Of a stretch of 64,000 nucleotides of DNA, positions 5,901 through 62,046 are shown one piece after another. Origin of the DNA: Paragordius varius (lineage: Eukaryota > Animalia > Nematomorpha). The stretch lies in contig OZ176050.1 in the NCBI GenBank assembly GCA_964247055.1, forward strand, positions 9,920,001 through 9,984,000. The letters run 5' to 3'. Every line of letters begins with the position of its first letter. The stretch's first letter is position 1. The position numbers and the translations under genes were made by a program. The notes below the pieces were generated by a model. It was not told the DNA's origin. It ran no database searches and was given only the letters and a program-made list of their open reading frames with translations.

Positions 5901-8900
5901 ATCAAAAATAGTATTAAATTTAAAAAAATTGATAAAATATCTCAGGGATATTTGTGCAGCTCGCGGAAAATTTAGAAAATTATCTCAAATACAGAGTTTC
6001 ATAATTTTCAAAAAAAATGCTATTTTCAAAATCTGAAAAATTTATTCTTCCCAAATTTTAGCAACAAACTAGTGAACTTTGGTTAAATAAATAGTATTTG
6101 TGTATGTAATTTTACAGTCTTATGTTTAACTCTCCAATACCTTTTCGGGTAGTTTTATATCCCATAGAGATTCTAATTCGAATATCTTAAAAAATATTTG
6201 AGCTATTAAGCTGCGTTTAAAAATATGCTTTCTTTAGTTTTTAGGTGCATTATGCAAACAAATTTTTTTAAAACATATAAAATTGTAAAAAAATCCTCAT
6301 ATCAAACTTTTTGCCGCCATTTTTTTCTCGCTAATGCCACAGGGAAATTAATGCATATTATGGTATGAAAAGGTAAATAATTAATTTTTTAAAGCTTTCA
6401 GGCTATATTTTACCAGCAAAAACTTGATATATTTTGATTTTAGATCAGCTGTCCATGTCAATCGTATTTTGGAGTTATCCTAATGTTAGAGTCTATAGGT
6501 CACAAAACTGTAATCAATATAAGTTTCATTTTTATATAATACATAAAAACAATGTTGGATAAAATTTTAGCTAAAATGAGTTTCAAAACTGTAGTTGATT
6601 TACAAAATTGATATCTGGGATATAAGACTACCTTAAAGGGTAAACTAGGGCAAAAGATAAGGTAATGAAGTGTTAAATCAAATAAAATCTATGTACATGT
6701 ATTTATTAATTGCAGCCCGCCGGTTGCTTTAAGTCAAAAATATGGCCCGCAAAGCAAATTTTGGCAGTATGATTTAATTAAATAATTATAATTTTGTAAA
6801 TGACTTATCAAGTGCCGCAAAAATTCATCAAAGATCTCATAAAAATAATTCAAAAGTTAAAAAGACTATTTCAATTAAATCTTTTAATTGGTGCAAAAAA
6901 ATTTAATTAACCTGTGCAATTTGAACTACTTGATTTGATGCCAAATCCCACATACGAGATGTTTTGTCGCAACCAGCAGTAAATATTTTTGTTCCATCCT
7001 ATAATTATATTATCATAATTGATAGTACTTCACTCCAACATGCAGACAATATTGGAGCATCTAATTTTTGCATTGCTTTTGGGACACATGCTCCAGTACT
7101 TTGAACCTCCCACACGCGCACCTAAAAGTATAATAAATTGATTAATACTAATGTAGTATATGGAAAATCGTGTGCCTTTTAAATATGAGAAGAACACACC
7201 AGAACCATGGAATACATTTTATATTTTTATACTTTAGGAATATGGATGATTCTTTATTTGTTAGAGTGCAATCTAAAGAGGCTTATTACCCTAATGAAGT
7301 TTTACGGTACTCGGAAATGAATTCTTTTTTAATAAAAGTTGAGTCACCCGTATAACTTCAGTTGTTTAGGGGAACAGTACCTATGCCACAGGAAAATCAA
7401 AGATAAGTACCTTTTTTACTAACTTATTTATTTAATAATCTTTTAACCATATATTCTTATAATTATTTGGGTTATCGTCTGCTCGGTTAAATTATTATTT
7501 TTTGTCGTTAACGTTTCATTTAATTAAAACTATTGTCGCTTATCAACAACTCAATTACACTGGACAACAAATTTTTCTGCCACTCGAGCTTTTTGCATTT
7601 TCTGATATTTAGTATCATTTTAAAGTAAATATGAAATAAAAATTATAACTCGATGGAAGAATTTCGTATAATTTGATTTTTTGATTATGCGCCCTCTTTA
7701 TCAAAATTTTACTAAAAAATGTTTTTCTTTGAAAATATACAAGTAATGCCCATTTGTAATATATCATTAGAAAGAGTAATAAAAACTCTATAAAATGCAT
7801 ACTAATATGTATTACATCGACAGTTAATATTGGGCACAAAGAGCGACAAACGCGCGAAGCAAGAGCATTTTTTTTAATTATTATATTTTTAAAACTAATG
7901 GATGAAAATAGCTCAAACTTTGTTTAGATGGTGATGAATGTCCAAAAAAGATAACACAAGAAAGTTTTTTTGATTAAAACATTTTTTATTGCTTTTATGT
8001 CACTCAAAACAGCCATTTTTAAGTTTTTTGTTTTTTAAAAATTACCATCTCATCAATATTAATTTTACGAGGCTGATAATTTGGGAATTTTGAAGATAAA
8101 AACGAAGTCTAAGGTATTTTTGATTTTTTATAGCCATTATGTAATAAATTTACAGTTATAACTATATATTTTAGTATCCACTAAGTAAAATATTTATGAT
8201 AATAATAATTTTTATTGAAAAAGCAAACCAAAAGCTTTTTCAAACATTTTTTTTAAATTTAATACTAAAATAACCCTAATAATTATAATAAAATAATTTA
8301 TATAATTTTCAAATTAGTTTGTCAGTAAAAATTCTTGACTTATTTAAGGATTGAAAATTTCGACCAGTTAAATCCAAATAATTTTTACATACGATTGATT
8401 TAAATGACTTACTACCATTTAAAAGATGCAGTTTTTTGCGCTCTTTCGAATGATATAAAATACATGGCATCATATCTAAAACTTTTAATTTTCGAATTTT
8501 CGAGTTTAATGTTAAATCGGGGCCAATTATCGATAAACTCTAATATAAAAAAATTCTTGCATGCTAGACCAATTTTCTTTTCAGATATACTAATTATCTA
8601 CTTTAATGAAATAAATTTTAAATTTACAAGAATGGCAGTTAAAAAAAGTTAAAATTTGTTGTCTAGTGTTATCAAACCTCTGTTGCAAAAATCAAACAAT
8701 AATGTCCTTTCCAAAACGCAGGTTATGTACGTTTTTTTAATTCCCTTTTTTCTAATCAAATTTAATAACACTAATTACAGTAAAAAATTAATCATAATAT
8801 TATTTTATATACAAATATTTGCAATCATAAAAATTTTATTAGAAAAAGTTTTTTTCCCAATACTTATATAGATCACGGTACTCTAACAATTGGTTCACCA

Positions 8901-9266
8901 GTTGTACGAAGGGGTATACCCCGTGCCATTGTCATTGTAGTATATGGATTACATGAACGCAAACAGGAAGCATGATAAATATGATAACTTAAATTTTAAA
9001 ATGTGAGCAAAATAAATTATTAAAACCGTTTGATCCCAGCTCGATGCCAACATGTAATTTACAGAGCTCCCTGGGCCCCCTGGACTAACAAATCTTAAAG
9101 CTGTCACAGTATCATCAGGTGGTTGCGGAACTTCCATGTCTTTAGCCGCATTTTGCGATAAATTAGAAGATCCTGAAGGAGGTGGTAGTGGTATTGCTGC
9201 TTGTTGTCCAAACGTAGAACCAAAGGGAGTAGAACTTGAAAATTGCTGAGACCCAAATATAGCCAT
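2974..9266 (-). CDS. RAE1: mRNA export factor Rae1/Gle2 (WD40); 10 exons
   Basis: Exons 9027-9266, 7029-7121, 6912-6998, 5793-5879, 5488-5559, 5121-5228, 4967-5045, 4493-4599, 3651-3848, 2974-3057. Motifs [74 protein letters not shown] and [13 protein letters not shown]. Intron 2 is 30 nt. Confidence 0.96.
7558..8668. mobile_element. Non-autonomous Chapaev3-type DNA element in RAE1 intron 1
   Basis: Inverted termini CACTGGACAACAAATTTT and (reverse complement) CACTAGACAACAAATTTT, with TTA duplication at 7555-7557 and 8669-8671. The termini resemble the element at 16636 (CACTGTGCAACAAATTTT). No transposase ORF. Confidence 0.8.
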
Positions 9267-9589
9267 GACTTAAAATTTAAAAATAATTAATGTGAACCAT
9301 ATGATTCAATATAAATGTATTGATGGATTTTGGAATATATATTAATGTGTAATTACAAAAAATCCACATTACAAATTCTGGTTCCAAAATTTTGAATTTT
9401 TTTTAAAATTGATGTTTTTTTTAGTTTTTGCATACGATTCCATTTTAAAACATTTCGTATCCCAAAGCTTTTTTAAAAATACTGTTTTAAAAGTTGCAGC
9501 TTTAATATAATTATTAAGCATTTAAATCCTATATTAGTTAAAATATATTATATATTTTACAGTTTTCTAACTAAGAGTCCAAAATTAGG

Positions 9590-11251: not shown

Positions 11252-11282
<31 letters not shown>

Positions 11283-16635: not shown

Positions 16636-19600
16636 CACTGTGCAACAAATTTTATCCTTTTCTTTTAGACCAGAGTGAAAATTACGATATCTTATAGAGA
16701 ATTTTTTTCTGAAAATAATGATATATTTATTATTTTCCTAGCACATTTTCACGAGCCGCTAAAAGGTTTCAAAAATCCAAAAACCATCAAAAATGCCTGT
16801 TTTTGTAACCCTATAACTTTTTGAATTATATAGCTTATTATATTTTTTGGTGGGAATATTACAAATTATATTTTAAAATTCATGTAACATTTTAAAATTT
16901 TTAAAAGTCTCTACTACTTTTTGATTTATTTGGAAAAAACGAAACTTAGCTCCAAAAAAATAGCGTTTCAAAACAATGAAAAATTAAAAGACCTACTGGC
17001 ATCATTTGATTGACAGCTTTTCATTATACATTACTAAAATAATAAAATTTGTTTTTTTCTAAATATGAAAAATAGTATATATATTCAATGTTATAATAAA
17101 TTTAATATTAAAATGGTAATATTTTTAAATTTATTAATATTAATGGATAATAAACTCTGTGTTTGAATTAATATTATATGATTTTTAGTAATATTTCAAT
17201 TATGTTATTATATACTTGTTATTAATTTAAAAGTAAATTTAGTTATTCTAAAATAAGGTTTTAAAAATTTAATACAGAAATGATTTCAAAATTATAAATA
17301 TATTAAAATATTTTTAATTAAAACACAATATACGAATATATTTATTATTAAAATTGATACTTGTTACATATTAATTGCATATATCAAATTTAAATTGTGT
17401 ATAACCATATTAAATGCATAAAAATATTTATTATGAAAATTGATAAATGTTACATATTAATTGCATCAATATATCATATTTATTACATGTTAAATAAAAT
17501 AAATGCATTAATTTATAAATTTGTATCAGATATTATAACATTATATATTATACAAGTATGAAAATTATTTTAAAAAGAAACATTTTTTGTAATTTTTCAG
17601 TTTATGATCTATATCAGGAACGCGATAAAGTGTCCAAATATAATCTGCCAACATCGCCGTATCACATTTCCCGTGATATCTATCTTCCATAGCTAAAATC
17701 TCCTGATGGAAGCGCTCCCCCTGTTCATCACTAAATGCCCCTAAGTTATCTGGAAAATACTCCAGATGAGCATGAAGGAAGTGAATTTTAAGAGACATGC
17801 GCACTCCAAACTCCTGAAAACATTTCATCATTTCGGCCACACCATCCTTATAACACGGGGATTTGACATTTCCTTAAAAAGTGATGTTCAATATATTATT
17901 ATTTTTTTAAAGAATTAGATATAACAAAAATTACCTAAGAAATTTCGGCAAACCCATATTACAGATTTCCAAGTTCTTAATTCTATATCACCCAAAAGTG
18001 ACATAAACTTATCATCATCAAATAATTTCCTTATCTGAGGGCCGACAAAAATACCCTCTTTAATCTTAGAGTCCGATATCTTGGGAAATATCTGACTAAG
18101 ATATTGAAATCCACGAGTGTCTAACTTCGCCATTGCTTTGACCAGATTTTTTACTAATCCAAGCTTTATATGTAACGGCGGAAGTAATATATTTTTTGTA
18201 TCTAACAGAGGAATTCGGCCTATGCTAAAATTACCTGGAGCATAATCATTACGCATAGGAAAGATTTTTTGATAATGATTTGTTGTATCCCTGCTATCCC
18301 AGCAACAGAGAAAACAACAAAATTTAACAAAACCAAAATTAAGACCTGCTAGAATTGCGGTTACTTTTAAATCCGTACAAATTTGCCACTGAAACTTCGG
18401 ATATTGTAACAACGTCAAAAATTTAGATAAATTTTCGTAGTTTTCCTTTTTGCAACGAGCATATGCAACAGGAATACTCGGTAAGTTGTTGTTATTATCC
18501 AAAAGGACGGCTTTAAAACTTGTTTTGGATGAATCCAAAAACAAACGCCATTCTTTGGGTTCCATTGGATATTGCAGGAAATTGAACATTCCCTCAATGT
18601 CCTGACAAAAAGTTATACCATCTTCTTCATTAAAATATTTCGTGAGATGGTCACTGCGCCCTCTATAGGATGTGCGCACACCAAAATCCAATGCATCATA
18701 TTCCGCAAGTCGAGAACCTTTAAATATAAAATACTATACCAAGGACATCAGCGTTTCGTTTGGATAAATTTAAATCTTTAACCAAATTATCCAATGCATT
18801 TTGATTCATTTTACGTTTTACTATAGTTAGACGGGAAGTGGTGGATAAAGTTTCAACGTCGTCAGAAATTATATCAGTGTTTTCTTCCTGCCCGCTAAAA
18901 ATGGGGGGTGTAGTGGACGAAGTATTGGCATATAAAATTTGTTTTTTAGCAGATTTGTTGAATTTGGAAATGTTAGAACAGCAAAAATAGCAATCCGTTA
19001 TATGGTCTTTCGGTTCATGCCAGACCATAGGTTCTTCAATTTTCAAAATTTTTTTATCAGGCCATGCCAATAAACCATTGTAGCATGTTTGACATAATGA
19101 ATGCGGGCTCCATGGCTTGTCTTGGTCCATTAAAGGTAGATTGAATTTCGCCTCGTAGGCAGCTTTAGCCCTTTCACTTATTTTTCGTCTTCGTGAGTTT
19201 CTGAATATGTATTGTCCACAGACGTGGCAAAACGAATTAGGGTCCCTCAAACATTTGCGCCGCTAAAAATAAATGCATATAATAACTTCACCTGTAACAA
19301 CGCGACAGAAATACTGTTTCAAGTTATGTTATGGATTGAAAAATGTAATTAAATTTTATTTAAACGTGCCACAATTAATAAAGGGTAAATTTAAATTAAA
19401 AAAATTGATTATATTGAATTTATTTAACTATAAAATGTTCTAATATAATATAAAAAATCACCTCATTGGAATTCATGGATATAAAATTTATGAAAGTTAT
19501 TTCCGGGAAAAAAACAAATGAATGCCTTTTTTGCTTTTCTGTTAGTTCAACATTTCAGTTTATATATATTTGCATGTTTATATTTTTTGTTTGTTGAAAA

Positions 19601-24405: not shown

Positions 24406-24468
<63 letters not shown>

Positions 24469-30387: not shown

Positions 30388-30983
30388 TTAGGTTTTTTCA
30401 ATTGGTTCAGGTTGATCAATGCGACAAACTGTTTGTACAGGTATAAAATATCCTTCATAAGAACACAAATCAGGTGTTGTATCGTAATGATAGTGTCCTC
30501 CATATTTGATGTTTTCATAATCAAATGGTTGTGACGATCTAACATAGTCAGAAAAAAAGAATACTGATTTTTATCTTCGGAGGCGTTAGAGGGGGAATTA
30601 GATCCACTAATGGTTTGCGGATCTGCTGTGGTTTGAAAGCAATGCGCATGTTTGCACCTTAATCCCAAATTCTGATAAAATTAAATATATATATATATCA
30701 TATTAGTTCGGTCCTTTTGTGTATTAATATTTGGTATTTAAAAATTTAACTCTAAGAAATGGTTTTAAATATAAAAAAAACCATGATCCGTTTTATCATT
30801 CCTTATACTGAGTTGGAAAAAGAAGAATAATATATATAAACAATAAATTCACATCCCAAATTATACTTTATAGTCCTTATTTACTAAGACACCGACGCAG
30901 GTAAGCGGTGCAGGAACATGAAAAAAACGCAACCATTCCATCATTTTTTCATCTGAGTCAAGAGGATCTGGGCAGAAATTTGG

Positions 30984-31046
<63 letters not shown>

Positions 31047-34000
31047 TTATGTTTTACGACTGTGTGTATTTTTATGTAACTTTTCACTGTACTTAAAACA
31101 AAGGTTAAATAATTGGTGAATATATTTTGAAACCATAATAGTGTTTAATATATTCTTCTAGTACTACAATATTCAAATAATTCCTATGTCAACCACAAGA
31201 GCCTTTTTACAAATTAAACTCGTATTTTATAAAATTCCATCTATGGTGTTTATAAATCGTTTATTGTTAAATATGGGCTATCTTTTTGTTTTTAGAAGAT
31301 TGACTAGAAATGCCAATTTACTCCTTAGTAAAAGACATTCATCTGTATGTTTTAAAAAAATAATAGATATGGAATAATATCGTTAGGGTAGAAAAAATAG
31401 TGTAAACTGTGATGAGTCGTGAATAAATTAATAAAGAAATTTGTATGTTAATATTAGCGGATGTTATTAAACTTTTTTGACTATCCTATGTATATTACAA
31501 CTATCAAAGGATAATTCTTAATTTCATATTTTTCTGGATACTGCTTAACAGAAAAAAAGTTTCTGTGGGTTATCGATCATACAAATTTAATATAAAACAA
31601 TAAATATATAATCACATTTAAAGAAAGTTCAATGCAATCAACTCCGTTTTCATTATAAATTTTTTAATCTAATAGCAGAAACAATAAGATTAACCCTATT
31701 AGATCAGATGTTTCCATAAGCTAGTAAATAAAATATCAATAATCACATTATATTTTCAAAATTAAACATAAAAAAGAAAAATTGCCTAGCATACAATGAA
31801 TCTTATGTACCTATCACAAGGAAAAGAAAAGTGCCAATTCGTCAAAACATACAAATAAACATTTGATGGTCAAAAAACTTTGTGTGTCTCTAAAATTATT
31901 ATATTAGTATAACATAGGGGTGATCCTCATGCGGCTGTCCAAGACATTATGTGCGGCCCGCGAACAAAATCCCATAAAATTTTAGTTAAATTTATTTTTC
32001 GCAGATAGATTTTTGAAATATTATATCCAAATGACAAGAATGATTAAACATCTGTTTGCATTTTACAGCTATGATTAAAATCTAATAAAATATTTATAAA
32101 TGCTTGCATATATATTTCGAATGTGGTCCATCAGTTTTTTTGTGTTCAAAATGCGGCCCATGCAGCCATTTGTGATAGACACCCCTGGTTTAACAGAATA
32201 TTTTTTCCATAAACTCGTTATAAATTTTTTTTATTAGGAACATTTACCAATCAATTTAAACATGTAATTTTTCATCTGGTATTTAAATAATTTTTTTCCA
32301 TTATTAGATACGAAATTAACGTTGTGACTTATAATATCATGATAAGGGTTGAGTTTCGACTGGTCGAAAAAATATAACAGGTCTGACCGCATATGAATGC
32401 AGTATGGTCTGATTAAGCAGACATTTTACCACAAAAATTGGTTTTGTTAGTTATAATTTCCTAATACTATTACTTAAAAATTAAATTTAGGTAATTCCTT
32501 AATTATGACATTCAATATAAAATTTATACTAATATACAGTATTAATTTTGTTAGGTTTTAAATTATATTTCAAAGTATTTGACTAATTTTTTAGGTCACA
32601 GTCAACCGCATTTATGGACCCAAGCCCCCAAAATATTTTATACATTATTCATACCATGATGTGAATTTTGGCCGTTCCCGTTTTTAAAACAAACACACCA
32701 CCAAGCCCAATAAATTTGTCGGCATAATCTTCTTTGAGACAATCTCGGATAACTTCTAGAAAATCGGTATTTTCTGGATGCAAACTTTTGCTAACAGAAA
32801 TTCTGATGGCCTAGATTTTAATAATTACAGTTATAAGGAAAATGAAAAAATTAGCAGATATTTTTTATAAAAACAACCATATTTTATGATCCTTGTTTTT
32901 TTTATAAATGACTCATCGTTTTAGGTTGCGAAACAAGAAATGGAGATGTAAATTTGCAGCATCTCCTTTATTATATATTTTACAATTGTAAATTTAAAGG
33001 TTTAAAAAAATTAAGGTATAAAAAGGTATGACCGTCTAGTTTTCATGTTTTTAATTTCTACTAAAATAAAATAATACTTTTCCCGGCATGCCTTTCGTAG
33101 CCAAAAAATTTCCGAGCAAACCGAATTGGGTGGAATTGAGGCGATCAATTGAAGGCAAACTTTCTTCTGCATTATCCTTAAATTAAAAAATCATATTACA
33201 ACAAAAACTACCAAAAATCAAATATGGTAATATAAAGAAATTAAAAATATAATCGTAAATAAAGAATAAATATAATACTGTACCGTTTCTCCATACCTTT
33301 TAGTTAAAATTACTGCATGGATAAATTTATTGATCAATTTTTATAAATATATAGATATCTTGTTTCATGTAATTATTATCAATTAATTTATAATAAAACA
33401 GAAGTGTACCAAAGTTAAATTTATAGAAAAAGAGTATATTTTATAGCCAATTAATTATTATGTTTCATGTTTTAGAAATTAATTAAACTCATTTACTAGT
33501 AAAAATTATACCAGTACATAACATTTAAATAAAAGAAATTATATTAGTTGGATATAATAATATATACCGAAGGTACAATCTTGGCTATATAAGATAAATT
33601 TTTTTCGATAACATAATTTTTCCCAAATTTCATGTTGGCAATAAGCTTTAATTTATATCAGTTTTAAATACTTCACTATTAGTTTTGATTTCATTGAATG
33701 GACCTGCTCCAGCACCTATGTAAAAACCTTCGGACATATCAACCAAGGTTGATATTACGCGTAAATCGTAAACTTTTTCCAAATTAGGTGAAGGACTTAA
33801 ATATGCCTGACCACCAACGTCAAGTAATTTGGGATATCCACATATACCTAAAATTACAATATACAAATTACCAGGAGCGGCTAAATGGAAAGGGGATTTT
33901 GTAAGATCGGGTACATTATTAACACTAACATCGGATATCTGAAAATGTTTCCCAATGTTTTTCTTAATTACTAAAATAAAATTATTGAATGCCTTCCGCA

Positions 34001-34047
34001 ATTTCGATCATGTTTATGTTTGGGACTATTTCTTGAACAACCTTCAT
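30388..34047 (-). CDS. C11orf54: Ester hydrolase C11orf54/PTD012 homolog (DUF1907), 345 aa; 9 exons
   Basis: Exons 33993-34047, 33872-33970, 33672-33847, 33568-33645, 33078-33176, 32655-32810, 30867-30983, 30565-30671, 30388-30538 (1038 nt, open). Motifs PDLTKSPF..GICG, VYDL, IGAGAGPF, IGLGGVF and HAH...GGHYHYDTTPD..YEGYF.P...RIDQP. Introns are 22 (GC-AG), 24, 26, 391, 267, 1671, 195 and 26 nt. Confidence 0.93.
30985..31038. repeat. (TA)27 microsatellite abutting a 3' splice site
   Basis: The run ends directly in the AG acceptor (30984-30985, minus strand) of C11orf54 exon 7. Confidence 0.9.
31915..32187. mobile_element. hAT (Charlie-like) MITE
   Basis: TAGGGGTG...CACCCCTG termini, internal GCGGCCC motifs, and 8-bp flanks GTATAACA / GTTTAACA (7/8 identical). 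Confidence 0.7.
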
Positions 34048-34167: not shown

Positions 34168-34774
34168 ATGCCTTTAATGAAAGGGCCGGCGCCCATAAGA
34201 CACACGCTCAAATACCTGGAAGCTGGTTCATTATATCTTAAAAACTTTGTAAAAATAATGATAATACATCACAATGATCCCGAGAAAGATCCAAATAAAT
34301 TTTGTACTGGCATATCGTAACCTATTTCTTTAATGATTTTAGGCAAATGATATTTTGGGACTTACCTCAAATACAATATAAAAATCCAAAAGTTCAAATT
34401 ATGCAAATTAAAAATATGACACCTACACCCTTTATATTATTTTATTTTGGTATATGATTTTTTCATTAAAATTAGATGATAAACAGAAAATGTATATGGA
34501 TATATTTAACAAAACACGTTCGGAAATTATGGATTTCATAAGAAATAACATCGCGAAAACGACGGAAGAATTGAAAGAAGAACGTGAAAAATCACGCAAA
34601 ATATTGAATCCTGCAAATTTTGGCACAGATTACGATAGAGAATGCATTTCATTAATTCCTGGCCAAGTTTTTAATTATTCTCTTCACCAACTCCCAGACA
34701 GAATGCGTGGAAAAATGATTCACCCAGAAGGCCGCTCCAAAAAACCTTCACGAGCCGTGTGGGCTATTCAGTGA
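34168..34774 (+). CDS. MRPS25: Mitochondrial ribosomal protein S25, 184 aa; 3 exons
   Basis: Exons 34168-34316, 34343-34449, 34476-34774 (555 nt, open). Motifs [51 protein letters not shown]...GQV and MRGK. Both introns are 26 nt. Confidence 0.94.
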
Positions 34775-35468: not shown

Positions 35469-35507
<39 letters not shown>

Positions 35508-44700: not shown

Positions 44701-47700
44701 TTACCTAGAGGATACTAAATTGTATATAACTGTAAATTTGTTACATTATGGTTATAGATCAAAAATACCTTAAAATTTTTTCTAGTCCATGAAATAATAT
44801 AATTTTATGCTTTCTAATAAAACAATTAATAAAAAAATAAATGTGGCTGTTTCGAATTACATAAAAACAATAAATAAATGTTTTAATCTTCTTGTGCAAT
44901 ATTTTTTAAATATTCATTGCCATCTACACAAATTTACATTTAGTTTTAAAAATTTATTAATTGAGAAAAAAGCTTTCGCTTTGCGGGTTTTTCGCTTGCT
45001 ATTTCCTATGTTAACTATCAATATAAAACATGTTGGTATGCATTTTATAAAGTTTTCATCATTTTTCAAATAATATATTACAAATGACCATTTGTTGTAT
45101 ATTTTCGAAGATAAATATTTTTTAGTAAAATTTTGATAAAGACTGCATCTAAATAAAAAAATTATGATAAAAATTTCTTAGGTAATAATTTCTAATTTAC
45201 ATTTACTGTTAAAATGATAGTAAATATCAAAAAATGCAAAGAACCAAAGTGCCAGAAAAATATGTTATCAAGTAAATAGGCAAAAACAAAATTTACAATA
45301 AATGAAATTTTAATGTTAATAAATATAAACAAATATCTAATATTAGTTAATTTAATACCAAATTAAAAATGGTAAAAATAATACAAATTGTCTAATTTTA
45401 TTAATTATATCCTATTTGAATATTATATAAATTTTAAATTTTTTTATTCATAATGGATTATATAAAATTTGTAAATAACGCATATACCTTCAGAAATATT
45501 ATTCTCATTATTTTCAAGAACTGAGTTCGTAGTATTAGTGTTATTACAGTTAAATAATTGGGCCAATTTATTCCGAATCATATCTAGGGCTTGAAGGGCG
45601 GCTGGATTATCGGTCGTAACGTTTGTCCCATCAATTCCTAAGAAAAAAAAATAAAATTTAAAAATAGGAGTAATAATGGGTGATAAGAGATTTATTATAT
45701 ACGGAATAATAATTTAATATGTAAAACATAAATATATTAGGCAGTTTATATATTTTATTAAAAAGTTAAACAGTTAACCGTTCACAATGATTCCGAATGC
45801 GAGAAAAATACATAGTTCATTATCTGCATGATCAACCTTTATATAGTATAATTATGAATTTTTTGATTTAAATTTCAATATTATTTAATTTTAATAAATA
45901 ATATTAAATATTAATAATATTCCGCAGATATTTGAAAATTATTTAATTTTGACATGATAGCTTGTGTTCATAATACACACAAACTAAAAAATTTATGGGC
46001 AGGTGTGCCCAACTTTCAACGATTATAACTTAGAAAACAGACTATTTATTCAAACTCATTATAATGGGACTCCACACTATATAATTAGTTATTTCATGCT
46101 TAATATTATATTATATACTGTTAGAAAGGTAACAGAGGTATAAAACGTAAAACTTGAAAAGATATTTATTCGGTTTTTTTGTGCTTTATATATACTATTT
46201 TTAAGTGAACATAATTTGCATTATAACAATAAAATTTCGAGTAACAAAGCATATGATATTTACATAGTACAAAAAAATATAAAAATAAGACAATTCAAAT
46301 CCCACAGAAAATTACAATATACAAACAAAATATATATTTAAAATTTGCATATATAATACATACCAAAATCTTTCAAGTCATTGACTAGAGAAGAATTTGT
46401 CGTAGCTTCAGTATTAGTTGTTTCTAGAAGGCTAATACATTTACCACCACTATTTTCAACCACGTCAACAACCATCATTTCATCATCATCATCACCATCT
46501 TCAACAATATTTTTATCGATAATAAAAGCATCATTTCTATCGGTAGAGGGTTCTGGAGGTTTTTTCCCAGCCTCTATATTTTCAGCTGTGGATTGAACAC
46601 AGGAGTAAGGTAGGGGTGGAGGCAAAGGAGCAGCGGGGTGGAAATGTTCCCCATCTGTATTCTGGGGCAAAGGCGGTTGTTTAAATGGACTTGAGGAGGG
46701 TAGGGGTGGGCGCGGGCTAGAAAGAGTCCCTGCATTATTACCACTACTCCCTGTTATGTCTGCTTTAATATTTTTTTCGTTTTTATGGGTGTCAGTGGGT
46801 GATGGCATCTCATAATCTAAATGATAATAAATATATAATAATACACATCAATGGAAAAAGATACAATACATGTTATTACAGACAATTATGGTTAGGTATA
46901 GGTAGGGTTTAGTTTCTGACCGGTCTTATAATGAACGGTCCACCTACTTATAAATGCAGTCATTAATGGTTATAAGCAATTATACCATTTGCACTTCAAG
47001 AGTGTCCTTGAACAATTCAAGTTGGTCCTTGAACAGTTCAAGTTTGTCCTTGAACATTTCAAGTTGGTCCTTGAACAGTTCAAGTTGGTCCTTGAACAAT
47101 TCAAGTTGGTCCTTGAATAATTCAAGTTGGTCCTTGAACACTTCAAGTTGGTCCTTAAAATTTATAAATTTTGATTTAACCATAATTTTTGCATTTATTT
47201 TTTTATTTTATTATTTATTGTCCTAATTTTCTTTATTTATTATATATTTATTCAATTAAAAATAAAAAATTTTATTTAAAAACCACTTTTTTGTTTTAAA
47301 CTATTTTTTTTTCAATTGAACAAAATTATTGACTTTTAAATGTTTTTAATGAAAAATTTTAATTAATAACCCAGAAAAATTATATATTTTTTATTTCGTG
47401 TTAAAATCTCATAAATATCCAATATTTTGAGAAATTAATAAAGATATACGGTTTCTCAAAGTTTAAAAATTGACGATTTAAAATTTATGTTAAATAATAA
47501 AAAATAGGTAAAAAACAATAAAATAGATGAATTATTTACGATTTGATTGATAAAAGTTAAAAACGAAACAAAAAAGTCAAAGTACCAACTTGAAGTGTTC
47601 AAGGACCAACTTGAAATGTTATAGGACTAACTTGAACTGTTTAAGGACCAATTTGAACTGTTCAAGGACACTCTTGAAGTGCAAATGGTATATCTTCACA

Positions 47701-48907
47701 AATGTAAAATTAATATGTATGCTAATTCATCCAAATAAATCAAACGTCCAAATTTGTTTTAATAACGTCAAAAATTAATAACAATCAATCGAAAATTGGA
47801 TATTTTAAAATTACACAACTTCCTATTATATTTAAGTTTACCATTATTTGATATTCAATTCAAGTTGCCTATTATTTTATTAGTTATCACAGGATAAATA
47901 TATGTTTAAAGTTTTGACTGGTTAAGTGGTTAGTCACACACGATCGGAGCAGTTAGACCAACCAAGCCTAATTAAAATCAAACCAAGTATTATTGCGATA
48001 ATAGGCTTTTAATCGAATCCAAATTATTATATGGAAAGATGTAGTAAATTAAAGACAATATTATTAGATCCTATATGATTTTTAGAAATTTTATTAATTA
48101 TAATTGGAATTAAATATATTTTTCATGAATCACAAAAAATGATATTGTAACAAAATATAATTATTGATAAAGAGTCTCACCGGTAATTTTAATCGTGAAT
48201 GTAACCGCTTAAATAATAATTGCCTAAGGCAAAACAAAAAATTATATGTAACAAAATTTATTTAATCGTTAAAATAAATTTAAAAATAACATTTGCTCTA
48301 TTTAATTATTTTTTTAAAAAAAACTTGGGTATATCAGAGATATCATTATTATATTAACTGATTGTATCTATAATAATTAAACCAAATATTGCGATTTTAA
48401 ATACAATTAAAATATAAATTAAAACAAATAATAGTTATAAACACCAAATGGTTATTATTAAAAATATAAGGGTAAATAAATTAAATGTTACCTTTATCTC
48501 CGTGTATTATATAATCCGGAATTTTTTTATCATTTAATAAATGATCTTCCATGAATCGCAATATATCTAAACTAAATTTTGAGCGGAGGTTAACATTAAC
48601 TGCATGATTGACAATATAATTTATTTGATCGGATAAAATTTTTGATTGCAAAACATCGGTACGCATTTTATTTCTAATTTCATTTTTACTTAGTAAATTA
48701 TTCCATTCTATATTCATAAGATGGGAGGCAACTGATGACTCCACTTGTTGCTTAAGGGTAAAATAGAATGGCTAATATTAATTGTGTAAAAACTTTTGTA
48801 TCAATTTCAGAAAAAGCCTCCTGTCGCAACTTGTCAAATATACCCTTGGATTTAAAAACATCCATGTATTTTAAAATTTCCTCCTCTGGCACATCTGAAT
48901 CGCTCAT
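35733..48907 (-). CDS. BOD1L1: BOD1L-like protein (N-terminal COMPASS Shg1/Bod1 domain plus long low-complexity tail); about 16 exons
   Basis: Exon 1 48794-48907, a 22-nt intron, then exon 2 48492-48771 give KGIFDKLRQEAFSEIDTKPFYFTLKQQVESSVASHL...EIRNKMR. A later exon carries ITVSSVHTSDLS. Phase-compatible exons include 46364-46816, about 45488-45637, about 43754-43938, about 42960-43087 and onward to 35733-35969. Middle and 3' exon boundaries are less certain. Confidence 0.78.
36748..36966. mobile_element. Tc1/mariner-type MITE, family shared with the copy at 63942
   Basis: TIR CAGT(G/C)ATGTATCCTTTATTTTATCAAAAATTTA at both ends, with TA on the left flank. Confidence 0.8.
37130..37750 (+). 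pseudogene. Divergent, decayed Chapaev-like transposase remnant inside the last BOD1L intron (antisense)
   Basis: TQAKAEADVVTGSMIKKIYTRQAFD and RYKELAEYFIKSFNDMG..QMCMNRHIVYEHLDKFP align by eye with SDSKIKEGIFVGPQIRKLF and MMKCFQEFGVRMSLKIHFLHAHLEYFP of the 17565-19476 transposase. Stops and a frame mismatch are present. Confidence 0.5.
41191..41300. repeat. Two-copy direct duplication, period 52 bp, intronic
   Basis: ATGAAAAACTCATTAACA(G/A)GCGTTTTAG(A/C)AAAAGAGCAAAC starts at 41203 and at 41255. Confidence 0.85.
43095..43489. mobile_element. Foldback-type element A with inverted arrays of a 21-bp repeat
   Basis: TACCATTTACAGTTC...GAACTGTAAATGGT termini. About 5 units of (C/T)TGAACAATTCAAATTCACCC lie in each arm, around an AT-rich core. 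Confidence 0.8.
46983..47690. mobile_element. Foldback-type element B with inverted arrays of a related 21-bp repeat
   Basis: TACCATTTGCACTTCAAGAGTGTCC...GGACACTCTTGAAGTGCAAATGGTA termini with TA on both flanks. Unit TTGAACAATTCAAGTTGGTCC, about 8 copies on the left and about 5 on the right. Confidence 0.85.
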
Positions 48908-53620: not shown

Positions 53621-53657
<37 letters not shown>

Positions 53658-53891: not shown

Positions 53892-53902
53892 TCACTTCCC
53901 CC

Positions 53903-56900
53903 CTAACGAAAGCGGGCAGGTTTCTGCCGACTTCTTGTCGGGTACCGTCGTTCTTGTGTTTTAGCGGGGGAGTAGATTGTCTCAGGTTTCTGGGTATTAT
54001 CATTATTTGGACTTTCGGCTGTCGGAGTAATTGGTTCGATTTCGTCCCTTGAATTGATCGTGTTTGGTTGCGTTTCAGCGATTGTTCCATCATCCGTGAC
54101 TGTGTTTACCTTCTCCTCATTTGTGTTGCTGGCAGTGGTCGGCTGTGGTTGTTTTACTATTTGGTCAGCGTGTTTCCTCACAACTTTGTCTCGGTCCTTG
54201 TCCCATACCTTGTATGAAAATAACCCTGTACGGTGCGTAATCTCTCTGGCGCGCCACCCTGGACTTAATTCATTTTTAATCATTACCTGGTCATTAATGG
54301 CAAACTGCCGTCGGGGGGTCGGTGCATCTAACAATCTCTCCCTACTATTTAACCAGGTTAAGGGCGTATGGGGGGTACGCTTGAACATTAACTGGGCCGG
54401 GGTTTCTTTCGTTGTTGAGTGTATAGAAATTCTATACGCCCATAGTCTAGTGTTAAACGCTTCGTGGGTGGATATCCCATTATTTTTTATTCTTGTGTAT
54501 TTATTTTTTATTGTACCTACTAACCTTTCTACCATCCCATTACTCTTAGGGTGGTATGGGGTAACCTTAATATGTTTAACCCCTAACGTACTTGACGTAA
54601 AGTACTCATTACTGAAATACGAAGCGTTATCGCTCACGATCTCTCTTGCAAAGCCAAACCTTGCAAACGTTTCTTCCAATTTGTGGATTATTTTCGCTGC
54701 GGTTACCTTTTTCAAAATAAATCCTTCTGCCCATTTCGAGGCACTATCAATTATCAACAACCAATACAAACCGTCTACCGTTCCGGCTATATCAATATGC
54801 AAACGCTCCCACACAGCAACATTATGATCCCACTGATACGTGGAATTCTGAGTAACATTCGGCCTACTACGTTGGCACGATTCGCATTGACTACTGGCTT
54901 TTACCAGGTCATTTTCTAATTCTGGCCAATAACACGTAAATCTGGCCATCGCTTTCATGGTCTCTACGTTGTTATGCCCGCTGTGTAGGTATCTCACCAC
55001 CTCTTTTTGGAGGAGCTTCGGAATTACTATCCGATCATTTAAACTTAATAATCCATATTGATATGCCAACTCGTCTTTACGGTTAACAAACTTTTCTAAT
55101 TCTGGAGAACTCCAGTCATGGTTGTTTAACGCTTTAATTACTTTTTATAATACTGAATCTAATGCGGTTTCTTTTCGAATTTCATCTCTGCTTAACCGCA
55201 CGTTATGACAATTCAAAAATCTCAAATATCTGGTAACTGCATGATCTTCATCATAGGCAACGATCTCGTCAATCGGCCATCTCGATAAATAATCAGCTCT
55301 ATTTTGAGCCCCTTATGACTTATTTCAAAGTCGTATTCATTTATCATATTAATCCACCTTAGTATTTTAGCATTATGTATCACTTTTAAATTTCGATCTC
55401 TATTTATTAACTTTACTAAAGGTAAATGGTCAGTTAATATTATAAATTTTCTACCATATATGAAACTATGAAACTTTCGTAACGCAAATAATATTGCTTT
55501 TAATTCCTTCTCTATAGTGGAATAATTTCTTTCAGCGTTGCTACACTTTTGTGAGGCATACGCTATCGGTAACCTTTCACTATTGATGACTTAAAATACA
55601 CCCGAATCCTAAATCTGACGCATCAGTTTCTATTATCAATTTCCTATTCGGATTATATGGTGTTAAAAACACTTTTTCGCTTAACAAATTCTTAGCTGCT
55701 ACCCAGCTTTTCTCATGTTTCTCGGTCCAACACCATCTCGTATTTTTACTAGTTAATTCATGTAAGGGACCGACTATCATTTGTAATTTTGGTATAAAGC
55801 GTTCATGAAATGTCAAAAAAGCTAAAAAACTACGTAACGACTTTTTATCCACCGGCCTTTTTAGTTCCTTAATTGCTTTGATTTTGCTTTCACACGGGCT
55901 TATATCCTTTTTCGATATTACAAACCCTAAATAGTTTACTGATTCTGCGCCTATCATTATTTTATCTTGTCTTAATTTAAATCCGGCCTTATCGAGACGA
56001 CTTAATACGTTATTTAAATTGTTAATGTGCACATTTTCCGTCCTACCAGTCACTAGGACGTCATCTAAATATACGCAAGTTCCCGGACTTTCAGCCAGCA
56101 ATTGTTCCATCACTCTTTGGAAGATGATAGGTGCCGTGGCCAGTCCAAACGGCATGCGTTTGTATCTAAAAAAACCTTTATGTGTTTAGATAGTTAACAA
56201 TTCTTGACACTCCTCTGTCACTGGCATCTGGAGGTAAGCATCTTTTAAATCAATTTTCGTGAATGTGATACCTTCACCTATTTTCGACACCAACTCATCA
56301 AACGTGGGGATTATGTGGGAGTCTTCTTGCAACCACTTATTAATAGTTACCCGAAAATCACTACATATTCTTAATTCGCTATTCTGTTTAAGTACATTGA
56401 CCGTAGGCGTGGCCCATGTCACAGGTGTGGTGTTAGGATCAACCGGTTCTAAAATGCCTAACTTTTCTAGCCTCGTCAGCTCTTTCTCCACCTTTTCTCT
56501 TAATGGAAAAGGCACCCTGCGACATTTCGGGATCGCATTCGCTGCAATGCGAATTTTTACAGGGTCCTTATAGCACCCTAACTTATTTTCGAATAAATTT
56601 TTAAAATTTTCACAAATATCATTCAATTTAAGATAATTAACTTTAACCTGTGGCATCTCAATCTGTTTCGCCATCCAGTCCAGTCCACAGATTAGCGGGG
56701 CCATCTTTTGCTTAGGCATAAGTCCCCGACTATTTGTTTACCATTTACTTGGACCTTGACACTTGCTGTCCCCATCATTGGCACTGTGGTATTGTTGTAC
56801 GATTTTACTGGGGGTGTCGGACGCAGCTTGGGTTTACCGATTTGCTCCCATGTGGCAAAGTTTATTACACTAATGTCCGAACCGAGATAAAGTCTTTTTT

Positions 56901-57780
56901 TAACCCGTTTATTACTAGTGTTATCAATAAGGGAGTTAGCGCCTTATGACCCACGTTAACTTCCTTTAATAATTGCCTATTGAAGTTGGGTCTTTGTCTT
57001 TTGGCCACACACATTCTCGCAAAATGGTTTAGCTTTCCGCATTTGTTGCAGGATCGTCTCCAGGCTGGATACTTGTTGGGTGGGTGTGTGGTGCCGCAAT
57101 ATTTACATGTGGTAGGTTTTATTATTGTTTGTCCATTGGATTTATTATGTTGTAACCGATTGATATTATTATTGCTGTTACTGTATCGAATGCTATTGAT
57201 ATTACTATTATTGTTATTCTGTAATCCAGCCTTAGCAGACATGTAGTGCGAGATCTACGATTGTTTCTAGTGGAACAGGAATACCGTTTATCAAAGCATC
57301 TGGATACCTGGAATGGATATCCATCTCTAGTTGAGGCTGTCGCAGTCCTATTACGAATGCATCACGAATACGTTGTTCTATGGCTTCAGTAAATTGAGCT
57401 TCTTCAGCTCCTATCTTGACACGCTCAAGAAATTGGGTAAAACTTTCACCCTCGTTGCGTACCAGCCTATAAAATTCAAGACTTTGGAATTTTGATTTTG
57501 TCGGATTGAATATTTTTTTGCCTGTTTCCGTGATCTCCGCCCATGTGGCGTCTTTTATTTTCTTGGAATAAAGGTGTTGGTTAATCTTTCTTACTATCAT
57601 GAATCCGCCATATGCTAGTATCGTTGATTTAAGCGTTCTTTCGGTTACTGGAATATCCTTTGCCTCGAGTACGTTGCTAATATACTCGAGGTACTCTTCA
57701 AATTTATTATTATCGTTATATTTTTCTATGGCCGCAATACTAGTATGAGGAGCTGTGGTGTTCATTGGTTCGTCAGCCAT
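53903..57780 (-). pseudogene. Gypsy gag-pol, broken by frameshifts and stops
   Basis: Gag with CxxC..H and CNKCGKLNHFARMC knuckles; protease with the D-T-G Asp apparently deleted (..GSDISVI); RT WATPTV/LRICSDFR/KIDLKDAYLQ/MPFGL/YLDDVL; RNase H ETDASDLG; integrase HSGH..CESCQ, WERLHID, IVSDN, PYHPKSNGMVER. Confidence 0.9.
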
Positions 57781-57792
57781 TTTGGCCACCAA

Positions 57793-58101
57793 TATTAACT
57801 AGGGACGACAATGTAAAGGTAACGGTAAATAAATTTATTATATATTGTATATCACAAAAACAATGCTTTATTAGGTTTAATGTATTCACATATATCAAGG
57901 TGAGATGTTTGCTAATATACAATTATCTCAAGGTATAATAATAATATTCACAAGTGGTGGGGAGGTTATAATAATATAATAATAGTACACAGATAAGTTA
58001 ATAGGTTAATGTACTAATATATAACGAATGTTGTTTGTGTGGTTAATCTAATCGTGTAATAACAGGTCTATTCAAATTAACCTGTCAGTTACACTCTAAC
58101 A
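57793..58101 (-). repeat. 5' LTR (309 bp)
   Basis: Direct repeat of 53538-53891. Confidence 0.95.
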
Positions 58102-58106
58102 ATTAC

Positions 58107-58370
58107 TTATATCGATTAAAATTCCTTCAATTTTTCTGCACTCAAGCATCTAAAAGACATATCTAAATGGACTTGCGATCTAAGACTTTTGATAAATAAG
58201 TTAGATAAATATATAATTTCAAAGTCATTTCCACCTATTAAATTTTGCGTCAGCATCAGGAATTAATATAGTTATGTAAAAATATTCTGTTTTTCTGCGC
58301 CTAAGTCTATTCCTCTCTGAAGGGCATAAATCCAATACATCCCGGGAGATATGTAAAGATCTTTTAACTA
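58107..58370 (-). pseudogene. Possible heavily decayed LINE RT fragment interrupted by the Gypsy insertion
   Basis: Weak RT-like strings ALQRGIDLGAEKQNIF and GILIDISN|KETR, the latter read across the removed LTR element. Confidence 0.3.
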
Positions 58371-59674
58371 ATTCAAATTCTGAAATGGTTAATTGCTCGC
58401 GTTACAATATAAAAAGATGAAACGTTATTGCTAAATGCTCATTGTTGTTGTTGCTAAGGTCGATTCCGACTAACTTTAAGAATTTAAGTTACCAATGAAA
58501 AATTCAACTCTATATCATTGTTCCACGAATAAAGTTAATTATTGGTAAATTAATCTACTAGAATGAGAAGAAGTGTCTAAAAAAAGATAACATAATCTAT
58601 AAAAGAGCGATATTGTAAAGAGTTATATAAGTTTTAATCAATTGATGATTATTTTAATTATATTAGATTCCTTTATTCCTAACCATTATAAGAAAATTGG
58701 TAGTTTTATATTAAAATTTTTAAAACTTAGATTTTTTTAAGCCCGAATTTTAGGGAGTATGAGGAAGTAGGTCGTTAAATTAATTAAGGCCTTGCTACTT
58801 TATTTGTTTTTGTAAAAGAAACAAATTGAACTCCCATGTTTTCTATAAAGTTTCCTAAAAAACTAGTTATTTTTAACTTGAATTTTTCAAAATCCTAGTT
58901 TTGCATAAAATGGCGCTTTTGTAGGGTCGAAAAAAATACGACTACGATCACTTCATTTAAAGTTGGAATATTTGGGACAATACTATAATTTAATAAATAA
59001 ATGCTCAGGCTTTCTGGAATTTCATAAAACCATATTTTGCAGTTTAAAGAAGCAAAATTCTCTTTTACAATCTGTTAAAATATTATCTAAAATATTTGTG
59101 AATTTTCCATATGGTATCACAAGCTATAATAAAACTGACAAATATAACATTATTAGGCTTTTTGATAGAAGATAAAAGAAAAAAACATTGATATCTTTAT
59201 ATTAAATTAAACATGCAATTTTACTGTTATAATTATAAATTAGGCTTCATCAAGACTAGTCATTACCTACCTTTTGTTTTTTAGGTTAGTAATAATTGAT
59301 ATATAACGATCCCAGTATAGCGTTATAAAACTGAAATATCTTTTAAGTAACTACAAAAGACATAACCAAATCTATTAAATAAAGTGTTGGCTTTGAGACA
59401 ATTGTATGGTCAATGAAAAGACCCACTCAAATTTTATATGCCAAATATCGAGCCTTTTTAAATTTACCCCAAAATTTAACTGCTCCCCAATTATAGTCAC
59501 GTTTTTCGTTAAGAAAATCCTTAGAAATATACCGATTTCTCGAAACATATGGGGAATGGAGATTTTAACATTCTAAGCCTTTTCTTAGACTAGCCTTTGA
59601 GCAGAACTTTACACGAAGTAAAATACGCCTTCAAAGAAAAAACTACCCTCAAATAAGTAATAATTCCTCTAAAA

Positions 59675-60075
59675 CAGGGCTTCTTAAACTATGGGGCCCC
59701 ACCCAATTTGGGGTCGCGAGTGATAAAAATTCAATCTAACAAAAAATGCTTTTTAACTTGTAAAATTATTGTTATAAACAAAAATAACAATCATCTTAGA
59801 TAATTATATCAGAATTAAGACGGTCAAAATCCACTTTCGTTTTTGAAACTAAAATAAAAACATTTCTATATCATTTTGTGCAAATTTCAATTTTAGATTT
59901 TTATATGAAACGAATTCTAAATTTATATATTTTCATGTGCATATGTATATTGTTACCTAATAAATATATATTCAAAAAATGTTAATTTATTTTTCTTTTA
60001 TATTTGTTGGGGCCGTTAAGAAACTTGCAATCATAAATGGGGTCGGGAATTACAACAAAAGTTCAAGAAGCCCTG
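59675..60075. mobile_element. hAT (Charlie-like) MITE
   Basis: TIR CAGGGCTTCTTAAACT / AGTTCAAGAAGCCCTG with internal GGGGTCGCG motifs. TSD degenerate. Confidence 0.7.
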
Positions 60076-60249
60076 GTCTGAACAATGATAACTAATTAGA
60101 ACTGACCGACTTTAGAATCAATCCCAAAAAACGGGAATGGTAGCATTATTTTGTGAAAAACAATGATTTACAATACCATAACCCAAAAAATGATATCGAA
60201 TATAAAATAATGAAGTGAAAAATTTTAAAATATAATTCTTTTATTAAAA

Positions 60250-60890
60250 TTAATAAATTTCATCTGATATAACATCGATCTCAGCTTCTGAAATACTTTT
60301 ATTAATTGAATTTTTCCGCCGTTCTAAAGCGATTTTTCTGTTAAATTCAATTTTTTGTTTAATTTCATCATCGATTGATTTTTCAGGGACCCTTTCTGTT
60401 TCTAGCGATGTAATTTCATCAAAATCAGTAGAAAGTGGAGTTGAAGTGTTATATTCTGTGAGTATTTGGGAAATAGCATTCTTATATATGACATTCTAAT
60501 ATACTTTTATATCCTTTTTCTGGCCTAAAGTTTCGATTTTCTCTATAACATCATTAAATGAATATTTTGGAAACAAACGAAATGACCAATACTCATAAAG
60601 CCCAATAATCTTATTTATGTCTTTAAGCTGAATATATAATCATTCAAACCTCATAACCTTTGCCCTTTAATTTAACTTTGGAAAAAAGGCCTGGTATAGT
60701 TTTTAAACCATTGTTTCCCAGTAATCTAATATATAAAACGACAAACTTTTCAGAATTGAGTTTTTGTCTTTCTCTGACAATTTTATTATTTTCGTTCCAA
60801 CTTTCTTCAAGCGATAACTGATTTAATTGTGTTTTATCTATTTCTTTTATAAAAATTACTTTTGGTGGTATTTTCAAATTCGAAATCCAT
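60250..60890 (-). CDS. TIPIN: TIPIN/Swi3/Csm3 replication-fork protection protein, 183 aa; 5 exons
   Basis: Exons 60860-60890, 60747-60837, 60650-60725, 60505-60627, 60250-60480 (552 nt, open). Swi3 domain RQKLNSEKLLGNNGL...KVKLKGKGYELKDI..IIGLYEYWSFRLFPKYSFNDVIEKIETLGQKKDIK. Introns are 22, 21, 22 and 24 nt. Confidence 0.92.
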
Positions 60891-60921
60891 TATAAAACAG
60901 ATGCTTTACATAGTTTGGTAA
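60891..60921. promoter_or_regulatory. 31-nt spacer between the divergent start codons of TIPIN and NDUFA12
   Basis: ATGs at 60888-60890 (-) and 60922-60924 (+). Confidence 0.6.
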
Positions 60922-62046
60922 ATGCGAAGCTTGATCAAAATTTATTTCGACAAATATAAACGTTTGGTTGATATATTTAAATTTAATGGGGGTATAAAAC
61001 AATCTTTTTTGCAATTATATTAGTAATGTTAATTTTAAAATTTTAGTACCGATGATTTGAAAGTAGGCCGACTTATTGGTGAAGATAACCTGGGAAATAA
61101 ATATTACGAAGATAATTCATATTTTTTCGGTTATATTTTATATTTAAAAAATATTTAGCTGTACATTATGCTTTACATTTATTCATATAGGGAGGAATAG
61201 ATGGGTGGTATACAACCGTAAAGTTGGCTTAGATTATGATGCAAGTCAAGTTGAACCAGGATGGTTTATTTTGCTTTTAATTATATTTATTTTATATCAA
61301 TATATTGCCAAATTTTTTTATATCATGCAATAAAAATTTATATTCGGGACAGGGATTACGGTTAATATTTGTGATTAGGGTTTTGCTCAAAAATAATTTT
61401 GGGCACGTTTTTTTCTCCCAAAATTTTAAAAATGTTTGTGGTAAAAAATTTGAAATCTTACTAAATTATATTTGTTATAAATAGATTGGTATTATTTTTT
61501 ACAAAATTAGCTATTAACAAATTAAGCACTTAGGACTGTTTAGATTAAAATAATGTCAAAAATTTTTACGATACATTTTTTTAAAAATAACCTAAAATTC
61601 AAATCTATTGTCCCTATATTTAAACGATTATTCGAATGCCGTAACTTTTTCTAGTTTTAGTTCCCAATCAATTTTTTTCTTTTATTTATAAAAAAGAAGG
61701 CACCAAATAAAATTGCGATTTTATGCAATATTAATTAAGGTTGGCCTGGCGCAGTCAACCCTTTAACCGTAATTTAATAACTTTATAAGGTTAATAAGTG
61801 TATTCCCTATTATTTTTAATATATTTAATAATGTGCTCATTTCCGCCATGAATCCATTTTTATAGGCATGCCTGGTTGCATAACATTACGGATGATATCC
61901 CAAACAGTAAAAAACTCATGTATGAATGGATGGAGCCTTATAAACCAAATCAATCAGGAACATTTGAAAAATATGTTCCTTATAGCACAACGCCTCAAAA
62001 AATAACTCCCTGGAAACCAGATAATTTTGTAAAAACACGTGTTTAA
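60922..62046 (+). CDS. NDUFA12: NADH dehydrogenase (ubiquinone) 1 alpha subcomplex subunit 12, 145 aa; 4 exons
   Basis: Exons 60922-61022, 61047-61129, 61191-61263, 61866-62046 (438 nt, open). Motifs [50 protein letters not shown] and YVPYSTT..KI.PWKP. Introns are 24, 61 and 602 nt. Confidence 0.95.

Follow-up and report, generated by a model that had tools for sequence, protein, structure and literature searches.

How short can an intron become in an animal whose other introns run to kilobases? The question is raised by a 64,000-nt stretch of the genome of the hairworm Paragordius varius (Nematomorpha; assembly GCA_964247055.1, contig OZ176050.1, positions 9,920,001 to 9,984,000), which we refer to as the window. 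A preliminary description, made from the letters of the window alone, had listed 14 segments with GT or GC at one end and AG at the other, all within genes, and had proposed that their removal restores the reading frame or gap-free homology to known proteins. For animal introns, a minimum close to 30 nt is usually assumed, and the only published exceptions are dicyemids and myxobolid myxozoans. Our analysis indicates that the 14 segments are very probably genuine GT/GC-AG introns of 21-30 nt in a bilaterian that is not a dicyemid. That they are removed from RNA can be deduced from the sequence with high, though not complete, confidence.

All coordinates and ends in the preliminary description proved correct (Table 1). 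On the coding strand, 13 of the 14 segments begin with GT and one (33971-33992, in the gene C11orf54) begins with GC, while all 14 end in AG. The window has a G+C content of 27.7%, and the probability that a random segment of it carries such ends is ~0.0026 for each site; 14 coincidental pairs of ends are therefore out of the question. Excision of each segment joins two open frames in every case, with flanking open stretches of 15-266 codons. If the segments are instead read through, a stop appears within 13 codons in 11 of the 14, mostly inside the segment itself. The remaining three lack an early stop: C11orf54b and TIPINb are in frame and free of stops, and in C11orf54d the shifted frame stays open. 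Homology without a gap supports 10 of the 14 junctions (RAE1, C11orf54 a-d, MRPS25 a and b, TIPINc, BOD1-like and, in part, NDUFA12). Thus the proposed effect of removal holds for the frame at all 14 sites and for homology at 10 junctions.

The lengths are 21 nt (one segment), 22 nt (five), 24 nt (three), 26 nt (four) and 30 nt (one), with a median of 24 nt, and the inner G+C content is 12%, compared to 32% in the flanking 60 nt. The lengths are even in 13 of the 14 (22, 24, 26 and 30 nt) and odd in one (21 nt), a distribution with p ~0.001 under equal odds that may nevertheless be due to chance.

C11orf54, which contains four of the segments, could be compared with its orthologue in a related animal. 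Using phmmer, we searched 1.84 billion cluster representatives with a 106-residue piece of the predicted protein. The top match, with 76% identity (E=1.6e-36), was RefSeq XP_065316748.1 from Gordionus sp. m RMFG-2023 (Nematomorpha); the runner-up was 49% identical (E=3e-16). When the Gordionus protein served as the query, no other near relative was found, and the next match was from Priapulus (39%). The preliminary description had made novelty depend on the source not being a dicyemid and had assumed a bilaterian; the source is a nematomorph, with C11orf54 nearest to that of Gordionus, so that the condition holds and the assumption was right. A flatworm, a rotifer, a myxozoan and a ciliate had also been considered as the source and were rejected on the strength of the Gordionus match.

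To obtain the Gordionus introns, RefSeq and ENA proteins were mapped exactly to the Gordionus locus (L001), and the spliced model of the window gene was built against the Gordionus protein (P0001). Over the whole protein, identity is ~70% (244 of 353 alignment columns), which sets the source apart from Gordionus itself. All eight intron positions are common to the window and Gordionus, one of them with an offset of 5 codons, and introns a-d are all collinear with the Gordionus orthologue. Exons of 55 nt (exon 1), 99 nt (exon 2), 176 nt (exon 3), 156 nt and 117 nt have the same length in both species. Retention of intron 2 would create an exact 8-residue insertion relative both to human 1XCR and to the Gordionus protein. 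The 41- and 43-nt introns of Gordionus are present in both independent annotations (RefSeq and ENA).

Judged by their positions, C11orf54 introns a-c are orthologues of accepted Gordionus introns and are ~15-17 nt shorter. Since their orthologues are introns of 37-43 nt, they arose when existing introns shrank and were not newly inserted, a distinction that the preliminary description had suggested drawing from orthologue positions. Short of RNA data, nothing speaks more strongly for the segments being introns than the shared positions in C11orf54. MRPS25, the other gene in this part of the window with such segments, is not adjacent to C11orf54 in the Gordionus locus, and the comparison is therefore limited to one gene.

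The other genes provide further support. The RAE1 segment joins 31 and 31 open codons and creates an in-frame stop when retained. The exons that flank it correspond to residues 67-96 and 97-125 of human RAE1 (3mmy_A), with none missing or added; the other RAE1 introns, estimated from exon positions, range from ~75 nt to 1.8 kb. In MRPS25, a stop lies one codon inside intron 1, and the flanks of this intron match residues 3-36 and 47-80 of human mS25 (3j9m_AT) in a locally collinear alignment that is gap-free at the junction. Across intron 2, mS25 residues 47-80 are followed by split codon 81 and then by residues 82-163 (aligned from 85), again with no gap. Removal of the BOD1-like segment joins 59 and 96 open codons; the upstream exon ends at position 26 of the COMPASS-Shg1 profile, which it matches from position 4, and in the downstream exon the profile resumes at position 27 (aligned from 29).

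In TIPIN, all introns belong to the short class, and the spliced coding sequence is a complete open reading frame from ATG to stop. Exon 1 comprises 10 codons, and exon 2 acquires an in-frame ATG only after removal of intron 1. Intron 2, being in frame and free of stops, is assigned by homology that is weak and partial; the alignments to Swi3 and to human TIPIN begin directly after it. Across intron 3, the Swi3 profile is unbroken, with positions 6-31 at the end of exon 3 and positions 32-74 at the start of exon 4. Intron 4 contains a stop two codons inside and joins 45 and 76 open codons. TIPIN, on the minus strand, and NDUFA12, on the plus strand, are arranged head to head (60890 and 60922). 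Their start codons are 31 nt apart, which implies a very compact bidirectional promoter. In NDUFA12, retention of intron 1 results in an immediate stop, and the alignment of exon 2 with the human protein begins at residue 29-30. No match to human NDUFA12 was detected for exon 1 (ATG, 33 codons), which is too divergent.

The remaining segment lies in a transposase-like gene (17568-19262, minus strand) whose long open frames match no Pfam family. Removal of the segment connects two open stretches, of 174 and 266 codons, that are in different frames. The second intron of this gene was taken as the shortest among several stop-free GT/GC..AG segments that link the two frames on either side of it. 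This mobile element thus carries both short intron classes of the window, a host-style intron of 22 nt and one of 62 nt.

Table 1. Introns and gene models discussed in the text, with positions in the window and, for C11orf54, the length of the Gordionus intron
Feature	Position	Strand	Length (nt)	Ends	Phase	Gordionus (nt)	Remarks
RAE1 intron 2	6999..7028	-	30	GT-AG	0		micro-intron
Transposase micro-intron	18718..18739	-	22	GT-AG	1		micro-intron
Transposase intron 2	17873..17934	-	62				next length class
C11orf54 gene model	30388..34047	-					9 exons, 8 introns
C11orf54 intron 1 (a)	33971..33992	-	22	GC-AG	1	37	micro-intron
C11orf54 intron 2 (b)	33848..33871	-	24	GT-AG	1	41	micro-intron
C11orf54 intron 3 (c)	33646..33671	-	26	GT-AG	0	43	micro-intron
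C11orf54 intron 4			~400			49	
C11orf54 intron 5			267			11156	
C11orf54 intron 6			1671			188	
C11orf54 intron 7			195			125	
C11orf54 intron 8 (d)	30539..30564	-	26	GT-AG	2	318	micro-intron; last intron
MRPS25 intron 1 (MRPS25a)	34317..34342	+	26	GT-AG	2		micro-intron
MRPS25 intron 2 (MRPS25b)	34450..34475	+	26	GT-AG	1		micro-intron
BOD1/BOD1L-like micro-intron	48772..48793	-	22	GT-AG	0		micro-intron
TIPIN gene model	60250..60890	-					5 exons, 183 codons; four introns, all 21-24 nt
TIPIN intron 1 (TIPINa)	60838..60859	-	22	GT-AG	1		micro-intron
TIPIN intron 2 (TIPINb)	60726..60746	-	21	GT-AG	2		micro-intron
TIPIN intron 3 (TIPINc)	60628..60649	-	22	GT-AG	0		micro-intron
TIPIN intron 4 (TIPINd)	60481..60504	-	24	GT-AG	0		micro-intron
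NDUFA12 intron 1	61023..61046	+	24	GT-AG	2		micro-intron
NDUFA12 intron 2	61130..61190	+	61	GT-AG			joins '...YFFG' to 'RNRWVVY...'; next length class

We compared positions 59800-62600 of the window, which contain the five TIPIN and NDUFA12 segments, with Logan contigs of three sequencing runs (X1, X3 and X4) that represent three samples and two organism labels. As these runs cover intergenic and coding sequence evenly, we read their contigs as genomic DNA. All five segments are present in these contigs, uninterrupted and with unchanged length, and no joint skips any of them. TIPIN introns 1 and 2 were found in X1 and X4 contigs and TIPIN intron 4 in contigs of all three runs. TIPIN intron 3 is spanned by an X4 contig and also occurs in an X3 contig; NDUFA12 intron 1 is spanned by an X4 contig and partly covered by X1 and X3 contigs. 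For these five segments, constant-length presence in genomic DNA excludes both an assembly artefact, a check that the preliminary description had proposed, and excision at the DNA level. In the TIPIN region, the contigs differ by three synonymous and five non-synonymous exon changes, which are too sparse for inference, and by four substitutions inside the micro-introns, which leave the terminal dinucleotides untouched.

Searches aimed at transcripts and at some of the predicted proteins gave no matches. The small RNA-labelled runs shared no words with the window, and the junction of NDUFA12 exons 1 and 2, with a gap of 0-30 nt allowed, had no match in JGI metagenome contigs. We found no transcript-derived protein of this species in the protein collections, nor any protein there that matched MRPS25 exon 3 or the BOD1-like exon.

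The micro-introns coexist with introns of ordinary size. We verified intron lengths for ~30 introns modelled in the window. Among these, 14 measure 21-30 nt and none measure 31-60 nt; NDUFA12 intron 2 follows at 61 nt and transposase intron 2 at 62 nt, the values that had been given for the next shortest. The preliminary description had counted ~59 introns with the 31-60-nt range empty; ~30 introns of this total were modelled here, and among them the gap stands. Of all introns modelled, between about a quarter and a half are micro-introns. The genes that contain them also have longer introns, from 61 nt up to 1.7 kb, and C11orf54 mixes introns of 22-26 nt with others of 195-1671 nt.

Within genes, the micro-introns are clustered and biased toward the 5′ end. 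They account for all four introns of TIPIN, both introns of MRPS25, introns 1-3 of C11orf54 and intron 1 of NDUFA12; the last intron of C11orf54 and intron 2 of RAE1 are exceptions to the 5′ bias. In the Gordionus C11orf54 gene (L001 8001-8677), the four shortest introns (37-49 nt) are likewise bunched at the 5′ end and are followed by an 11-kb intron. Since minimal introns are bunched in this way in both animals, 5′ clustering seems common to nematomorphs.

Sequence signals in the micro-introns are sparse. Position 3 is A in 11 of the 14, giving a GTA start. Near the 3′ end, A occupies position -7 in 11 of the 14 (binomial p=0.0017, for one position) and position -8 in nine. T predominates from -6 to -3 and occupies position -3 in 10 of the 14. 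A weak 3′ pattern, A-A-T-T-T-T-A-G, thus exists, and the statement in the preliminary description that no branch-point or polypyrimidine consensus is visible was a little too strong. The C11orf54 introns of Gordionus occupy the same eight positions in the same phases, and the short ones are also AT-rich with a GTA start. Unlike the introns of 22-26 nt with T runs of 3-4 nt in the window, however, they measure 37-49 nt and contain CTAAT-like branch motifs and T runs of 6-7 nt.

We consider it highly probable that the observations as a whole are best explained by ordinary U2-type GT/GC-AG introns whose minimal length has become unusually small in this nematomorph lineage, at ~22-26 nt (range 21-30 nt), with at least C11orf54 a-c derived by shrinkage. 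Such introns could be recognized by intron definition, in which the whole intron is read as one unit. The 5′ site may be reduced to GTA or GTT and the 3′ end to (T/A)AG. The branch adenosine would be expected ~7-8 nt before the 3′ end, and a run of 3-4 T residues might take the place of a polypyrimidine tract. These introns would be spliced in the same transcripts as a second short class of ~61-84 nt and kilobase-scale introns. The spliceosome or accessory pathway for introns of ~22 nt that the preliminary description had proposed is, on these data, a hypothesis.

Several observations weigh against this explanation. For three of the 14 segments (TIPINa, TIPINd and the transposase segment), frame logic is the sole support. 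C11orf54d is offset from the same-phase 318-nt Gordionus intron, which is located 5 codons farther upstream in a poorly conserved stretch; when spliced at d, the protein has the same length as the Gordionus protein through that region. An alternative 26-nt segment at the exact Gordionus position was rejected, as it lacks GT..AG ends. The branch-point signal is statistically weak, coming from 14 sites in AT-rich sequence. Run X8, labelled as RNA of the same species, yielded no contig matching 59800-62600 at a likeness of at least 90%. This last result also lends itself to an alternative in which the segments are not removed at all and are frameshifts in pseudogenes or small insertions with GT..AG ends by coincidence, and the transposase segment would fit such an account, as frameshifts are common in decaying transposons. 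But it would require that mS25, NDUFA12, RAE1 and TIPIN, all essential single-copy genes, be broken. The flanks remain conserved and free of stops, in reading frames linked by splicing alone. It would also leave unexplained why positions coincide with annotated introns of the related Gordionus, and the joint chance of the ends is ~1e-30 or less. We therefore regard nonremoval as very improbable. Still less credible is an origin of the segments in assembly or sequencing errors, or their excision from DNA in the manner of ciliate internal eliminated sequences. The latter are similar in size to the 21-30-nt segments. However, the segments end in GT..AG and not in TA..TA, no excised form was present among the DNA contigs, and the five segments examined in the three runs have identical lengths in all samples and under both organism labels, with no joint that skips them.

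A more serious alternative, which we nevertheless consider unlikely, accepts the introns as real and places them in the lower tail of one broad distribution of short introns, with the empty range of 31-60 nt a small-sample effect. Only ~30 introns were checked, all from one window, and in the single Gordionus gene compared, the short introns are spread over 37-49 nt without a pronounced mode. Scans that were blind to the gene models are compatible with such a tail. In an ORF-joining scan of the window for GT..AG segments with a codon-usage score, signal was not separable from noise at 28% GC. With composition filters and decoy dinucleotides, the scan returned 27 GT..AG candidates at 21-30 nt compared to 14-20 for the decoys, a mild and non-significant excess. 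As neither scan was discriminating, the length class is not independent of the gene models, which also counts against a discrete class. On the other hand, a single broad distribution does not readily yield 14 introns at 21-30 nt and none between these and the introns of 61 and 62 nt. Moreover, the orthologous introns move as a group, from 37-43 nt in Gordionus to 22-26 nt in the window, and flatworms have just such two-mode patterns.

The explanation that we favor, U2-type introns at a very small minimal length, can be set beside known systems. In the flatworm Gyrodactylus salaris, intron lengths have modes of ~32 and 58 nt (PMC4040987), and in Opisthorchis felineus the modes are 37 and 90 nt and annotation pipelines miss the microintrons (PMC6530080). 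As in flatworms, including tapeworms (PMC4040987, PMC6530080), the window seems to contain two short modes, which occur alongside long introns within single genes; introns of the shorter mode lie close to one another and often near the 5′ end, their splice sites are precise, they have no polypyrimidine tract, and annotation easily misses them. The window differs in that its micro-introns, at ~22-26 nt (median 24 nt), are roughly 10 nt shorter than the flatworm mode of ~32-37 nt, are not strictly 5′ (C11orf54d, RAE1) and occur in Ecdysozoa (Nematomorpha) instead of Platyhelminthes.

Among animals, introns shorter than 30 nt have been described in Dicyema japonicum and myxobolid myxozoans (2026), with no other case among 51 genomes (PMC13644364); the main text of that paper does not mention Nematomorpha. 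Those introns resemble the micro-introns of the window in being shorter than 30 nt in a parasitic animal lineage, in having positions conserved relative to longer introns of relatives, and in signals reduced to GTa...AG with a weakly conserved A a few bases before the AG (PMC13644364). In Dicyema and the myxobolids, however, introns below 30 nt are the majority (median 22-27 nt), whereas in the window they are a minority, about a quarter, beside introns of 60 nt to kilobase scale. The introns of ciliates (20-33 nt in Paramecium, 15-16 nt in Stentor) and of chlorarachniophyte nucleomorphs have comparable lengths and minimal signals, but these systems are unicellular, nearly all of their introns are tiny and no long introns coexist with them.

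The preliminary description had suggested that the phenomenon may be undescribed. Because two-mode microintrons of flatworms and introns below 30 nt in Dicyema and myxobolids are already published, the kind of intron is known; what appears new is the lineage, and the fact that introns below 30 nt form a minority. The window joins the architecture known from flatworms, in which a minority of tiny introns accompanies long ones, to the length known from myxozoans and dicyemids, in a parasitic lineage that is the third of its kind and belongs to another superphylum. In a literature search that lacked most subscription journals, we found no paper linking Nematomorpha or hairworms with intron length. 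Going further, we lean slightly toward the view that this gordiid has a genome-wide class of 21-26-nt introns that evolved independently. Introns below 30 nt would then have originated three times among animals, with this origin the first within Ecdysozoa. The same machinery would splice this class and the introns of 60 nt and of kilobases, with a branch point ~7 nt from the 3′ end and essentially no polypyrimidine tract.

If this is true, P. varius and Gordionus, with its introns of 37-49 nt, form a natural experiment on minimal intron length. As the orthologous Gordionus introns are ~17 nt longer, one can ask which spliceosomal components changed. Any model of splice-site measurement and pairing by the spliceosome would also be constrained by the presence of 22-nt and kilobase introns in one transcript. 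There are practical consequences as well. When the minimum intron length of an aligner or gene finder exceeds ~20 nt, such genes come out as frameshifted fragments. Annotation suffers, as do scores of completeness, and with them any inference of gene loss in this little-studied phylum; the loss of universal genes reported for Nematomorpha may be inflated where gene finders overlook such introns.

Some other features of the window are recorded here. An Rfam scan of the window found no RNA genes. Next to TIPIN, positions 59800-60081 are a very high-copy repeat, with a summed X1 contig depth of 40,000-347,000 compared to ~600-1,300 for neighboring single-copy DNA. The repeat has many variant copies and loose ends, and it seems to be the only part shared by run X6, which carries a third organism label. 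In two non-coding stretches (61282-61433 and 62266-62437), X1 yielded two contigs of about equal depth, one identical to the window and one ~5-7% different, suggesting that heterozygosity is very high or that the sample was pooled.

An intronless ORF of 515 codons (27881-29425, minus strand) has a signal-like N terminus, a G+C content of 41% and no Pfam family; an exact look-up of the protein in protein collections returned no record. Short tandem repeat arrays at 43000-43530 and 46930-47780, whose translations in several frames of either strand read 'FKFTLEQ/LELFKDQ', are located within introns of the large BOD1L-like gene or close to them. Finally, a Gypsy-type long terminal repeat (LTR) retrotransposon with gag, reverse transcriptase, RNase H and integrase domains occupies 53900-57800 on the minus strand and has a G+C content of ~38%, compared to 26-28% in the surrounding DNA.

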